In this document: in pieces, positions 11,477 through 16,435 of the stretch | Layout of the letters: every line of letters begins with the position of its first letter | How positions within the stretch are numbered: position 1 is the first letter of the stretch | Assembly: GCA_950097015.1 (NCBI GenBank) | Contig: CATNEN010000001.1 | Coordinates: forward strand, 23,684,001 to 23,748,000 | Reading direction: 5' to 3' | Source of the DNA: Macrostomum hystrix | Lineage: Eukaryota; Animalia; Platyhelminthes | Length of the DNA stretch: 64,000 bases | Position numbers and translations under genes: made by a program | The notes under the pieces: generated by a model | Seen by the model: the letters and a program-made list of their open reading frames with translations, nothing else | Databases searched by the model: none | Told to the model about the DNA's origin: nothing

Positions 11477-11538
11477 TCATGGGTGAAATTGTCAATCAAA
11501 AAAGATCTGTTGGATCGCCGTATTAGCATTCTAATCAT
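11477..11538 (-). ncRNA. non-canonical box C/D snoRNA, family B (18S helix-23 region guide)
   Basis: Minus: ATGATTA-GAATGCT..CGGCGATCCAA-CAGA..TTGATTG..TTCACCC-ATGA; conserved in 6 copies. Confidence 0.78.
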
Positions 11539-11727
11539 TTGTAGTAGCCAAACTAACAATGAACCTGTGAAATCGCATGCTTCTCACCTTCAATATAGAA
11601 TTGATTCATTTATCGTCGGGCAAGACAAAATCGCAGCACAGGTTGCCTGAAGTTTTAGAAAAAATTATCTTTCATTAATGCTGTAGATAAAATAGAGGAA
11701 CTGCACTGCAACATTTTCGCATCCAGA

Positions 11728-11789
11728 TCATAGGTGAATTTCTCGATCAGATTTTGAATCTGTTGGATCGCCGTAAGCATTCTAATCAT
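11728..11789 (-). ncRNA. non-canonical box C/D snoRNA, family B
   Basis: Same boxes and guide as 11477; linkers diverged. Confidence 0.78.
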
Positions 11790-11959
11790 TTTGAACCGAT
11801 TGTCAATGGAATTCATTGATTCCATTTTTGATTGTCTAAAATCTACAAGAAGGGTTCAAGACTATGTACTAACGAAAACTGGTATTGTTGCGACTTACAC
11901 GCAAATTTAAGAGAGGCTTGAACAATGCTTGGTTGTTGGTGCGATGCGATGGAGAGTAG

Positions 11960-12115
11960 CGAAGTCACGTGAAGTGTGAGAGGGCGTTGTGCCCTGGACT
12001 ATATATTTAAACATGGTTAAGTTGGACAGACTGGAGGAGGTTGGCGGTACGATAACAAGAGTGCGCGACTGAGGGTAGGAGAGGAGGCTAGAACGTGAGC
12101 GGCGGACCAATCAGA
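11960..12115 (-). promoter_or_regulatory. candidate internal Pol II promoter (TATA-like, CCAAT, E-box)
   Basis: Minus-strand TTTAAATATATAG at ~11999-12011, CCAAT at 12107, CACGTG at 11966. Followed by a GTAAGT donor at 11898 with no obvious acceptor upstream. Confidence 0.4.
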
Positions 12116-12498
12116 AAGGAGGAAAGAGAGAAAGGATAGAGAACTGGACGATGTAAACAATAAAAGTACAGAGAACGAAAGAGTGAATAGAGGACAGAAG
12201 GCAGAGACGAAAGTCGCGACAGGTATCACAATTTGCTGCAATAAGATTACAATAGCTTGTTTCTTAAACAGCAGACAACTGTCTGTTGAAACAAATATTT
12301 TCATGCTTGAGAAACATACTAGATCACTTTGACTAGGATGTTTTAGTGAATTTAAACAATGTGTATTAATTAGGTAAATTGTGTCCTTGAGTAAGAGAAC
12401 ATATTTTTTTAGTGTTTCAGTTCATCCAGCTCTACTGTGGGTACTAGGAATTTAGCTGATTACCAATATAGCTGATTACCAATATAGCTGATTACCAA

Positions 12499-12710
12499 CG
12501 AGGCCACATTCATTTGGGGCGCAGCCGCAGAGAGAAGGCTTGGGGGCTTGTCGTGCAATTTACTCCCTTGAGGGCCAACCTCCAAGGCACAGTGAGAGTG
12601 TACACTGCCTGACAGTGAGAAATTCGGTGCAGTGTATATATTCAAGTGTGTACACACCTGCGTGCGTTTGTGCTGAGGAGTCAGCGGAATGGGCAGAATT
12701 GCCTCCCAGC
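12499..12710 (-). mobile_element. fragment of a dispersed SINE-like repeat
   Basis: Reverse-complement match to ~62415-62572 (ccccaaatgaatgtggcctcg, aaattgcacgacaagccccc). Confidence 0.7.
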
Positions 12711-12910
12711 TCACTAAATAATGCCCTTACCCGCAGCCATCCTGCAACAAATTATATTACACATTCAATAGAATTTACTCACCTAATCGGATATTTTTTC
12801 AGTAGCATCGCAATGTTGATTGAAATCTGTAAATTGTGTAGTTGTAGGAACAAATGCTAATTGCTACTTAAATTCACTAAGGCTGTAATAATCAGAGAAT
12901 TACAGAACAG

Positions 12911-12977
12911 TCATAGGTGAAGTTGTCAATCAAGGTTTAAAGATCTGTTGGATCGCCGAATAAGCATTGTTAATCAT
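12911..12977 (-). ncRNA. non-canonical box C/D snoRNA, family B
   Basis: Plus-strand image tcataggtgaa...tctgttggatcgccg..agcatt..taatcat. Confidence 0.78.
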
Positions 12978-13161
12978 AATGAGCATTTTTATTGTCAAAA
13001 GTAGCTATTGCCATATACTTTACTAACTATATTTAATAACCAAAGCTTGGGCGCTTGCAGTTGGGTAGCCAAATCGAAAAAACTATTAACCAAATCATGA
13101 AAATGATAAGTAATCTCAATTCAGGGCAGTTGCATAATCGTTACAAAATAAAATGGCAAGG

Positions 13162-13200
13162 TCAGTAAAAAGGTAACTGGCTATAACAAAGTCAAGGCCT
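13162..13200 (-). pseudogene. truncated SNORD58-like snoRNA (3' half only)
   Basis: tcagtaaaaaggtaactgg..aaagtca matches the copy at 15597, then breaks at the MITE; no box C found. Confidence 0.65.
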
Positions 13201-13201
13201 T

Positions 13202-13621
13202 CCCTGTAAAAAAATTGGCTGCTTCTTCGGCGGGTTTTTTGTGCAAAATAGGAGTGGAATCTACCAAAATCCCCCCTATCTCGCAAGAGTTAAAGAAACC
13301 ACCCAGGAAGCAGCCGATGTAACCGTAAATTGTGCGGAAACCGCCGAAGAATCACCCCAACCAGTGGCCCATGGGACAACCAGAGAACTATTTACGGGCG
13401 ATTCCTCGGCGGTTTCTGAGCATAGAATCTTCCGAACTGGAGGATTCTTTGGGTGATTCCTTTTCGCCACCAAGAAGCACCGAGAAAACGCCCAGTTGGG
13501 TAGATTCTAAGCATGGAATCATCCGATTGGTATGTTTCCAGCGTTCGGCTGTTTCTTTTTCTGGAAACACCGCAGATTCCAACTGGAATCACCCAAAGAA
13601 ACATCCCTATTTTTTAGCGGG
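13202..13621. mobile_element. MITE-like non-autonomous DNA transposon (~420 bp)
   Basis: Imperfect ~30-bp TIRs (ccctgtaaaaaaattggctgcttcttcgg vs reverse complement cccgctaaaaaatagggatgtttctttgg), CCC..GGG ends, internal inverted repeats. Confidence 0.65.
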
Positions 13622-14061
13622 TTAATAAAGCTCAGGTGTCTTAGCTACGCAGGACGCTGACAGCCCTTTAACTGCGACTGGAACTCTGCACAGTGTGCTT
13701 CTTAAGACTTCGTGACTTTATCTCTTTCGGGCCAAGGATCCTTCACCTCACCGAAGGCAGAAGTCCTGACGCCCTGGTGGCAGCGGTACTACTACACTAC
13801 CTAGTATTCTTGGACTTCATATTGGAGTCCGCCGGATCCCGCATTGTTAGCAGGACGACCGGTACAACATAATATAAGCACATGGATAACAGCAAGCTAT
13901 ACTCACCTCTGAGAAATTTTGAGCACTGAGACACATTAGAGTTGAATTGAAACACCACTTTCTTGGGCTCTACAAGTTTAGTTGAAAGTTATTTTTATTC
14001 GACAGCTTTAACAATGAACAATTAATTTTACAATTTCGTTTTCCTACTCAATAAGACTAGA

Positions 14062-14126
14062 TCAGAATGATAAAAGCTAATTTCAGTTGGATTACTCAAC
14101 AACGAGGAATTCAATTTAATCATCAT
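14062..14126 (-). ncRNA. box C/D snoRNA, snR57-like
   Basis: ATGATGA / GAATTCCTCGTTG-TTGA / CTGA on the minus strand. Confidence 0.85.
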
Positions 14127-14574: not shown

Positions 14575-14638
14575 TCATGGGTGAAGTTCTCAATCAAACT
14601 TTTAGATCTGTTGGATCGCCGAAAAGCATTCTAATCAT
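14575..14638 (-). ncRNA. non-canonical box C/D snoRNA, family B
   Basis: Conserved boxes and guide. Confidence 0.78.
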
Positions 14639-14871
14639 TTATATTTATAAAAAATCATGCAATATATAATATGTTAGCAGTAATATCAAGTATAACTAAT
14701 TACTTTACTTACCATTGAAAGTATCTGTTCGCGATGGAAAGACATTGTCCAACAATATTTTTTAATTTTGATTTTTCTTAAAAAAAACATTCCTGAAAGT
14801 TCAAAAAGTATTTGAATTCAAAACACAATGAATAAATATTAACAACGTAATAATGGTAGCATAATTTTGAA

Positions 14872-14938
14872 TCAGAAAGATAATGAATCTAATTTCACTT
14901 GTACAGCTCAACAACGAGGAATTCAATTTGATCATCAC
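14872..14938 (-). ncRNA. box C/D snoRNA, snR57-like
   Basis: GTGATGA / guide / TTGA / CTGA. Confidence 0.85.
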
Positions 14939-15108
14939 GTGACCTAGGATTTTTCTAATCATAAACCTGAGCAAAATAGAAGCAAAGAAACTCACACTAT
15001 AGTCGATCTCGAGCCAGATTTGTACTTTTGCTCCTACAAATAGATTCGATAATAGTCCAATTAGATGTACTTTTATGACAGAAATTGTCTTATAGTATTA
15101 GGTTTAAG

Positions 15109-15185
15109 TCAGCTAAAGGTAACTTTAGGGTGTAAATCAAATAAACCAAGGTTTATCAGAAGGTGTCCCAAAGTTTTGTCATCAT
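15109..15185 (-). ncRNA. SNORD58: box C/D snoRNA, SNORD58-like, U-targeting subtype
   Basis: Plus-strand image tcagaaggtgtcccaa...tcatcat. Confidence 0.85.
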
Positions 15186-15365
15186 TCAATTAGGAGGGCC
15201 TGGTGTGATAAAAAAGAAAATCAACAGCAACCTTACCAGCAAGTATACAGCTATAGCACACAGACAGCTGCTCAGAACCTGTAAAATTGAATTTAAGAGA
15301 CAAAAAACTAATTTGATGCAGTTTAATTTACAAAGTCGATTAATAAACAGACGTATAATAGTTAG

Positions 15366-15430
15366 TCATGGGTGAAGTTCTCAATCAAACTTTTAGATCT
15401 GTTGGATCGCCGTAATAGCATTCTAATCAT
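15366..15430 (-). ncRNA. non-canonical box C/D snoRNA, family B
   Basis: Conserved boxes and guide. Confidence 0.78.
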
Positions 15431-15596
15431 TTAAAATAGAAAATGATATTTCCATAAAAGCAATGGTTCTTACTCACCGCAGTGGCATTTAAAGTTGTCT
15501 TTAACGAGATATACAGTGATCTAAAAATAAAGAAATGAAATTTATATAAAAAACCTAAAAAGCAATAAAGCAGGATTTCAACGATGAAAGCAAAGA

Positions 15597-15679
15597 TCAG
15601 TAAAAAGGTAACTGGTTATAGCAAAGTCACGTGTGAATGGTGTCACGCATCAGAGGTGTCCCAAGAATTTTGTCATCAT
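15597..15679 (-). ncRNA. SNORD58: box C/D snoRNA, SNORD58-like, G-targeting subtype
   Basis: Plus-strand image tcagaggtgtcccaag...tcatcat. Confidence 0.85.
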
Positions 15680-15846
15680 TTGAAATAATTATTACGAAAC
15701 ACAATACAGGCAGATCAGGCTATACCTACCTGAACTGTCGGCACTATACAACCATGTGTTCTTATGTTCTGAAATTATAATTTACATTATGTATAGTACA
15801 CAGGTTATATGCAAAAATAACTGTAAGATTATAGTACAAAATAAAA

Positions 15847-15912
15847 TCAGAACAAAAATAATTAATTTCATTACTATACGCTCAACAACGAGGAATTCAA
15901 TTTGATCATCAG
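15847..15912 (-). ncRNA. box C/D snoRNA, snR57-like
   Basis: CTGATGA / guide / TTGA / CTGA. Confidence 0.82.
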
Positions 15913-16112
15913 TTAACCAATTTATCTATTATTTTTCTGTTAGCTTGAAAATTGAAACTAGATATATGAGACTTACACTGCGGCAGAGTCGATCACGTGG
16001 GCAACTTGTACTTTTAGCCTACAATACAGGCAACAGGTAGAGCATACTTACAAAACTTGTTTTGATAATTTACAAAGTTTTAAATGGTGACCATGTTAAA
16101 AAAGGGCTGACA

Positions 16113-16189
16113 TCAGCTAAAGGTAACTTTAGGGTGTAAATCAAATAAACCAAGGTTTATCAGAAGGTGTCCCAAAGTTTTGTCATCAT
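16113..16189 (-). ncRNA. SNORD58: box C/D snoRNA, SNORD58-like, U-targeting subtype
   Basis: Identical to the copy at 15109. Confidence 0.85.
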
Positions 16190-16370
16190 TCAGTTAGGAG
16201 GGCCTGGTGTGGTAAAAAAAGAAAATCAACAGCAACCTTACCAGCAAATATACAGCAATAGCACACAGACAGCTGCTCAGAACCTGTAAAATTGAATTTA
16301 AGAGACAAAAAACTAATTTGATGCAGTTTAATTTACAAAGTCGATTAATAAACAGACGTATAACAGTTAG

Positions 16371-16435
16371 TCATGGGTGAAGTTCTCAATCAAACTTTTA
16401 GATCTGTTGGATCGCCGTAATAGCATTCTAATCAT
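16371..16435 (-). ncRNA. non-canonical box C/D snoRNA, family B
   Basis: Identical to the copy at 15366. Confidence 0.78.

Follow-up and report, generated by a model that had tools for sequence, protein, structure and literature searches.

What is encoded by a short element repeated six times on one strand of a flatworm genome, and what might it do? This question is raised by a stretch of 64,000 nucleotides (nt) from Macrostomum hystrix (GenBank assembly GCA_950097015.1, contig CATNEN010000001.1, positions 23,684,001 to 23,748,000 of the forward strand), hereafter the window, in which an initial annotation had proposed a family of small nucleolar RNAs (snoRNAs) of the box C/D type, here called Family B, with altered boxes and three blocks complementary to 18S ribosomal RNA (rRNA). 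Judged from its sequence, Family B is a new and apparently lineage-specific member of the box C/D class, not a new kind of RNA, and we favor, with moderate confidence, the reading that it is a lineage-specific guide for the methylation of A927 in 18S rRNA, aided by extra base-pairing. Much of the original proposal was upheld, namely the C/D anatomy, the intronic location, an expressed and spliced host, complementarity to the 18S rRNA of the species itself, and the lack of an Rfam match; the idea that the boxes covary within the family was not.

The family is defined by a 15-nt core (CGGCGATCCAACAGA), for which a pattern search returned six exact matches in the window, every one of them on the minus strand (at 11506, 11759, 12944, 14607, 15398, and 16403), vs. 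0.05 expected by chance. When 100-nt stretches around each of these matches were aligned, 49 of the resulting 71 columns were invariant. The conserved core is sharply bounded, with 62 to 67 nt from box C to box D, and the flanks cannot be aligned except in the recent duplicates B5 and B6. On the minus strand, the copies occupy 11477-11538 (B1, 62 nt), 11728-11789 (B2, 62 nt), 12911-12977 (B3, 67 nt), 14575-14638 (B4, 64 nt), 15366-15430 (B5, 65 nt), and 16371-16435 (B6, 65 nt, identical to B5), as defined by core match and alignment, and the span first reported (11477-16435) coincides exactly with the box C-to-box D limits of B1 to B6.

All copies display the same order of elements, which reads box C (AUGAUUA), 1 to 2 nt, AAUGCU, a variable spacer of 2 to 5 nt, CGGCGAUCCAA, and box D' (CAGA), followed by a variable spacer of 7 to 11 nt, box C' (UGAU(U/C)GA), an 11-nt segment with an invariant UUCACC, and box D (AUGA). 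This is the layout of a compact box C/D snoRNA, in the order C, guide, D', C', guide, and D, and the spacing of the internal boxes (7 to 11 nt between D' and C', and 11 nt between C' and D) is that of the class. The ATGATTA, CAGA, and ATGA motifs previously read as boxes C, D', and D were found in six of six aligned copies, and AATGCT, CGGCGATCCAA, and TTCACC are equally invariant. Variable sites are confined to the spacers, to positions 1, 8, and 11 of the D guide, to the nucleotide or nucleotides just 3' of box C (in B3), and to position 5 of box C'. In B4, which we used as the representative copy, box C spans 14632-14638, the AAUGCU block 14625-14630, the D' guide 14611-14621, box D' 14607-14610, box C' (UGAUUGA, which reads UGAUCGA in B2) 14590-14596, the D guide, filling the 11 nt between C' and D, 14579-14589, and box D 14575-14578, all on the minus strand.

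Do such boxes still build the structure that defines the class? In the kink-turn of box C/D RNAs, G3 and A4 of box C form sheared pairs with G3 and A4 of box D, U5 and U2 form a U.U pair, and position 6 of box C together with position 1 of box D makes the first Watson-Crick pair of stem II. The six copies keep the G.A dinucleotide of box C, both sheared G.A pairs, and the U.U pair, and they have U-A instead of G-C at the next pair, with U rather than G at position 6 of box C and A rather than C at position 1 of box D. The kink-turn motif of the class is present, and the literal consensus (RUGAUGA and CUGA) is missed at two positions. Since all pairs are kept and U-A is still a Watson-Crick pair, the kink-turn should fold, and on this model the swap should leave Snu13 binding and assembly of the small nucleolar ribonucleoprotein (snoRNP) intact. 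As for the claim that the boxes have covaried, the swap does preserve the pair when compared to the general consensus, and it is compensatory only in that comparison because all six copies share one state.

This combination of boxes is rare, has an already published precedent, and is not new. The expressed snoRNAs GtNM-R12-14 of the Guillardia theta nucleomorph carry AUGAUU and AUGA, which the authors argue to be compensatory and to preserve the Watson-Crick pair of the kink-turn, citing archaeal data on mutants, where L7Ae binds again once both positions are changed (PMC6461891), and AUGA is used as box D in a minority of Dictyostelium snoRNAs (PMC8817022). While the substitution pair in GtNM-R12-14 is identical to that of Family B, those RNAs come from an unrelated lineage, from an algal nucleomorph and not from a metazoan nucleus, carry other guides, and lie in another genomic context (PMC6461891). 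The likeness is convergent, and no homology is implied.

In which transcript do these elements reside? RNA evidence was taken from one public run (X1), as assembled contigs of long RNA. One of these contigs has eleven joints, and a check of their splice motifs revealed CT..AC at every joint when the plus strand is read, which corresponds to GT..AG on the minus strand. It follows that the minus strand is transcribed and spliced as a multi-exon host RNA, which spans 11227-19710 and whose exons are very short. B2 and B3 lie in introns of 1136 and 1080 nt, B4 and B5 in introns of 231 and 199 nt, and the distance from their box D to the 3' splice site that follows is 82, 84, 93, and 89 nt, respectively. 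Since this distance stays within 82 to 93 nt from B2 to B5, it is held even in the two long introns, and it corresponds to the geometry of the splicing-dependent intronic box C/D snoRNAs of animals. A contig joint from 16281 to 15476 reflects the duplicated B5/B6 unit. B1, whose intron is outside contig coverage, is preceded by ~49 nt by a GTGAGA motif for a 5' splice site, as judged by sequence. Altogether, RNA contigs place B2 to B5 in introns, and when the evidence from duplication is counted as well, an intronic location holds for five of the six copies.

Neighboring introns of this host harbor snoRNAs with canonical AUGAUGA and CUGA boxes, which exhibit the same 3' splice-site geometry as Family B. 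There are three such families on the minus strand within 11227-19710, with the guides UUGGGACACCU, CUUUGGAGACCUUAUGA, and GAAUUCCUCGUUGUUGA, and some of them show weak Rfam matches to SNORD58, Me28S-Gm3113, and snoR10, Family B being the only variant-box family in this host. The canonical guides (SNORD58-like and others) and Family B have in common the order of elements, a length of 62 to 67 nt, an arrangement of one per intron ~80 to 90 nt upstream of the 3' splice site, and a guide that abuts box D' with the target at position 5. In contrast to these guides, Family B has AUGAUUA and AUGA in place of RUGAUGA and CUGA, lacks an Rfam match, and has a predicted target in helix 23 of 18S rRNA. 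Two other features of the region were noted. Within the two long host introns, the segment 12426-13622 shows contig depth up to ~5000 and many partly matching contigs, which probably stem from insertions of expressed repeats or transposon fragments on the upstream side of B2 and B3. An intron-less open reading frame encoding an ARF1-like protein of 183 residues (9105-9656) lies on the same minus strand, with the last Family B copy ~1.8 kb upstream of it.

Which RNA might Family B recognize? We compared its guides with the genome's own ribosomal DNA (rDNA) unit of 11.6 kb, including its 18S rRNA, which contains GAGGUGAAAUUCUUGGAUCGCCGCAAGACGAACAACUGCGAAAGCAUUUGCC, with GAGGUGAAAUUCUUGGAUCGCCG...GCGAAAGCAUUUGCC. 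The D' guide displays 11 of 11 Watson-Crick pairs with 18S 923-933 (UUGGAUCGCCG), with a duplex energy of -19.6 kcal/mol, and this is its best site in the whole rDNA unit (12/13 vs. at most 10/13 elsewhere). In box C/D guides, a stretch of 10 nt or more that directly precedes D or D' is complementary to rRNA or small nuclear RNA, and the D' guide, abutting D', is such an element. As a match to 18S rRNA, this 11-mer is compelling by itself. The D guide pairs with 18S GGUGAA(AUU) at 913-921 over 6 to 9 contiguous base pairs (bp), with energies of -9.3 to -11.4 kcal/mol. UUCACC is opposite GGUGAA (913-918) in all copies, and in B1, where the guide is AAUUUCACC, pairing reaches 921 with nine of nine pairs. 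The AAUGCU block is complementary to 18S (AA)AGCAUU over 6 to 8 nt (-7.0 to -9.9 kcal/mol), at 953-958 and, over 7 to 8 nt, from 951/952 in B2 to B4. In B4 it is extended to AAUGCUUU, complementing 951/953-958, and it is a candidate for extra base-pairing.

By the rule that the fifth guide position marks the modified nucleotide, A927 is the predicted D' target and G916 the D target, which in an alignment to E. coli rrsH correspond to A704 and G693, respectively. These results agree with the initial annotation, which had named three 18S blocks, all of them present in the species' own 18S rRNA, had pointed from D' to the A of UUGGAUC, which is A927, and had aimed the D-side block at the equivalent of G693 through an imperfect pairing, in which single mismatches fall at different positions in different copies. 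In the Rfam consensus structure of the small-subunit rRNA, the hairpin loop of helix 23 reads GUGAAA, the internal loop below it has UUGGAU on its 3' side, and CGCCGCAA forms the 3' strand of the next stem. Since pairing covers loop, internal loop, and stem strand, binding of the snoRNA would melt the whole helix 23 hairpin.

The two shorter complementarities call for more caution. On the 13-mer score alone, the D-side match is indistinguishable from noise, with several sites in the rDNA unit scoring equally, and it is its adjacency to the D' target that makes the 18S site meaningful. With the 20 nt adjoining the D' target on its 5' side, the D guide pairs at a level (nine or more Watson-Crick pairs) that 0.2% of random AT-rich 11-mers attain. 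Because positions 1, 8, and 11 of the D guide drift freely, a full 10-bp duplex is not under selection, and we accordingly interpret pairing by the D side and by the 5' block as an accessory to a single catalytic D' guide. A chance match to AGCAUU has a probability of ~4% (p ~0.04, estimated for five 6-mers in a 35-nt window). The AAUGCU block is thus statistically weak alone, and what suggests that it matters is its invariance among the copies and its adjacency to the D' target. An alternative D-guide target was found in a 28S expansion-segment hairpin (rDNA unit ~5362; L159 ~8097; Rfam large-subunit rRNA ~2005-2030), where the guide CCCACUUC (3' to 5') matches GGGUGAAG with 8 to 9 contiguous pairs in B4 to B6, a contiguity above that of the 18S site. 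We judged it probably a chance match because the hairpin is variable and comparable scores occur elsewhere in the rDNA unit. Regarding the origin of the element, descent from an antisense 18S fragment is not supported, since gapped local alignment was no better than shuffles and the block spacings did not match. We also noticed that UGAUUA of box C (14632-14637) and UUGAUU of box C' (14591-14596), on the minus strand, are complementary to 18S UAAUCA(A) at 977-983, collinear with the three blocks.

How widespread is the element in this genome, and is it maintained? We searched the whole 220-Mb assembly with the 15-mer pattern (at most two mismatches) and with a calibrated sequence model (R1). 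Both searches gave these six copies, and the model also detected one decayed copy, B7psi, in the same cluster (16825-16886, minus strand, 21.8 bits, E = 0.03). The other near-matches to the 15-mer in the whole genome were chance matches in coding-like sequence, with no further copies or canonical-box paralogues. A match of AATGCT followed by CAGCGATCCAACAGA on contig C24 was rejected as an additional copy because it lies in coding-like sequence. In a metagenome scan with AATGCT, a gap of 0 to 8 nt, and CGGCGATCCAAC, none of the 120 loci recovered had flanking snoRNA features, and we regard them as chance matches. In B7psi, ATGA of box C has become TATT (it reads UAUUUA), the D' guide has three substitutions, D' reads CUGA, and C' and D are gone, so that it differs at 15 of the 49 positions invariant in B1 to B6. 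It is a useful internal control for neutral decay. Because B7psi illustrates the course of decay without constraint at this locus, the other six are probably under selection and not merely young, and the comparison argues for purifying selection on them. Since B6 is identical to B5 and has near-identical flanks, it is a recent duplication of a ~1-kb unit.

Is the family already known? Rfam was searched with the whole window at gathering threshold, with 11 kb at E <= 10, and with a single copy at E <= 10. No match was found on any Family B copy, including in the single-copy search. The sole gathering-level match in the window was a U5 spliceosomal small nuclear RNA gene (27081-27196, plus strand, RF00020, 78.5 bits, E = 1e-11). 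In the literature, we found nothing relevant on snoRNAs or methylation at helix 23 or the 690 loop.

Parallels for the mode of pairing do exist. Extra base-pairing has been shown experimentally to stimulate methylation and has been proposed to open structured targets in yeast and human (van Nues et al. 2011, PMC3116282). As in Family B, short conserved blocks outside the guide complement rRNA near the methylation site in snR75, snR76, snR70, and human examples (PMC3116282), whereas Family B has two candidate accessory blocks that flank the main duplex on either side, one of which sits in the position of the D guide. Family B is also similar to the acetylation guides snR4, snR45, and U13, which have bipartite antisense elements around a short rRNA segment (PMC5464676). 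Nevertheless, we rejected an acetylation-guide model because the C at the junction, C922 in UUCUUGG, has a G as its partner in B2 and B4 to B6, four copies of six. In acetylation guides, two antisense arms flank a target C that stays unpaired and lies in a CCG context.

How might Family B work? On the reading that we favor, it would be released from introns of the expressed minus-strand host transcript, and its terminal kink-turn, with U-A at position 6 of box C and position 1 of box D, would still support snoRNP assembly. The D' guide would then pair with 18S 923-933, i.e., the 3' side of the internal loop and of the stem under the helix 23 hairpin, and with this pairing fibrillarin would come to sit at A927 (E. 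coli A704), the nucleotide predicted to be 2'-O-methylated. The AAUGCU block (18S 953-958) and the short D guide (18S 913-921, in the 690-loop hairpin) would provide extra base-pairing that opens the hairpin and stabilizes docking. Binding of Snu13, Nop56, Nop58, and fibrillarin, like methylation of A927 or G916, is what the sequence predicts. A927 would probably be a new target; D-side methylation of G916 is possible but less likely.

Several observations count against this reading. To our knowledge, no 2'-O-methyl group has been mapped at the helix 23 target site in yeast or human, which could mean either that the site is new or that it is unmodified. A stable RNA of ~65 nt would be expected to accumulate from these loci, for which the RNA data consist of contigs of long RNA, and the evidence for conservation comes from copies within one genome. 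In the alignment, terminal stems are of 3 to 4 bp at most, partly offset, different among copies, and weak or offset in several of them; many intronic snoRNAs have no terminal stem. Finally, boxes D' (CAGA) and C' (UGAU(U/C)GA) are both degenerate, a common state of C'/D' motifs in eukaryotes, and divergent C'/D' motifs are active in yeast (PMC3116282).

The same facts can be read differently. Family B might form a noncatalytic chaperone snoRNP that methylates little or nothing and, much like U14 domain A, U3, and snR190, keeps 18S 913-958 from folding in early 40S assembly, a segment that comprises the hairpin of helix 23 with its 3' strand as well as the junction strand. We consider this unlikely, while acknowledging that it would account for three collinear antisense blocks which cover the whole hairpin and would melt it, for the degeneracy of both C' and D', for a copy number that suggests a high dosage need, and for the fact that we know of no methylation at these sites in model organisms. 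What speaks for catalysis instead is that the 11-bp duplex begins exactly at position 1 upstream of D', which is the catalytic register, and that the ordinary methylation guides of the same host likewise occur, as a rule, in multicopy arrays. The activity of divergent C'/D' motifs in yeast (PMC3116282) also speaks against a purely chaperone role, and methylation and chaperoning are not mutually exclusive. A more specific proposal along these lines is a "platform clamp," a flatworm-specific snoRNP whose three collinear blocks would keep the 690-loop hairpin of helix 23 unfolded in early 40S assembly, possibly methylating the A704 and G693 equivalents as well, through its U-A kink-turn. We regard this proposal as similarly doubtful. 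Both nucleotides belong to the P/E-site face of the platform and, as far as we know, carry no modification in any eukaryote mapped to date.

If both guides were catalytic, Family B would be a double methylation guide of the U24/SNORD45 type, acting on A927 from D' and, 11 nt away in the 690 loop, on G916 from D. The invariance of UUCACC, the fact that G916 falls on position 5, counted from box D, in every copy, a C'-D spacer of 11 nt that fits a guide, and a duplex energy reaching -11.4 kcal/mol are all compatible with this scheme. We nonetheless find it rather improbable, since there are only 6 to 9 contiguous pairs, guide positions 1, 8, and 11 vary freely, several chance sites in the rDNA unit score as well over 13 nt, and the 28S expansion-segment site gives 8 to 9 contiguous pairs. 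The least probable of the readings, in our opinion a very unlikely one, is that the copies are nonfunctional relics, i.e., crippled snoRNA paralogues or antisense rDNA fragments that form no stable snoRNP and resemble each other through recent duplication or gene conversion. Two nonconsensus boxes, the presence of a decayed copy, the recent B5/B6 duplication, and RNA support from long-RNA contigs rather than mature RNA would be in keeping with it. However, boxes and guides are identical from B1 to B5 although the flanks are unrelated and the spacers differ, the two box changes re-create a Watson-Crick pair rather than break the motif, the one copy that has truly decayed is quite unlike the others, and the distance to the 3' splice site is maintained. 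The methylation guide for A927, aided by extra base-pairing, is the reading that we retain.

What would such a guide mean? If expressed and active, Family B would provide a lineage-specific modification or folding helper at the central, universally conserved platform of the small subunit, where the 690 loop and its stem contact transfer RNA and messenger RNA and are bound by late assembly factors. It would likewise offer, in a metazoan, a natural example of a C/D kink-turn in which G-C is replaceable by U-A, and scanners that require RUGAUGA and CUGA will miss such genes. The conceptual advance is modest because the box variant has a published precedent and the class of RNA is well known. Macrostomum is amenable to RNA interference. 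As to the wider context, minisatellite arrays are exceptionally dense in the window, with more than 40 arrays with periods of 12 to 36 nt, some of which exceed 3 kb.

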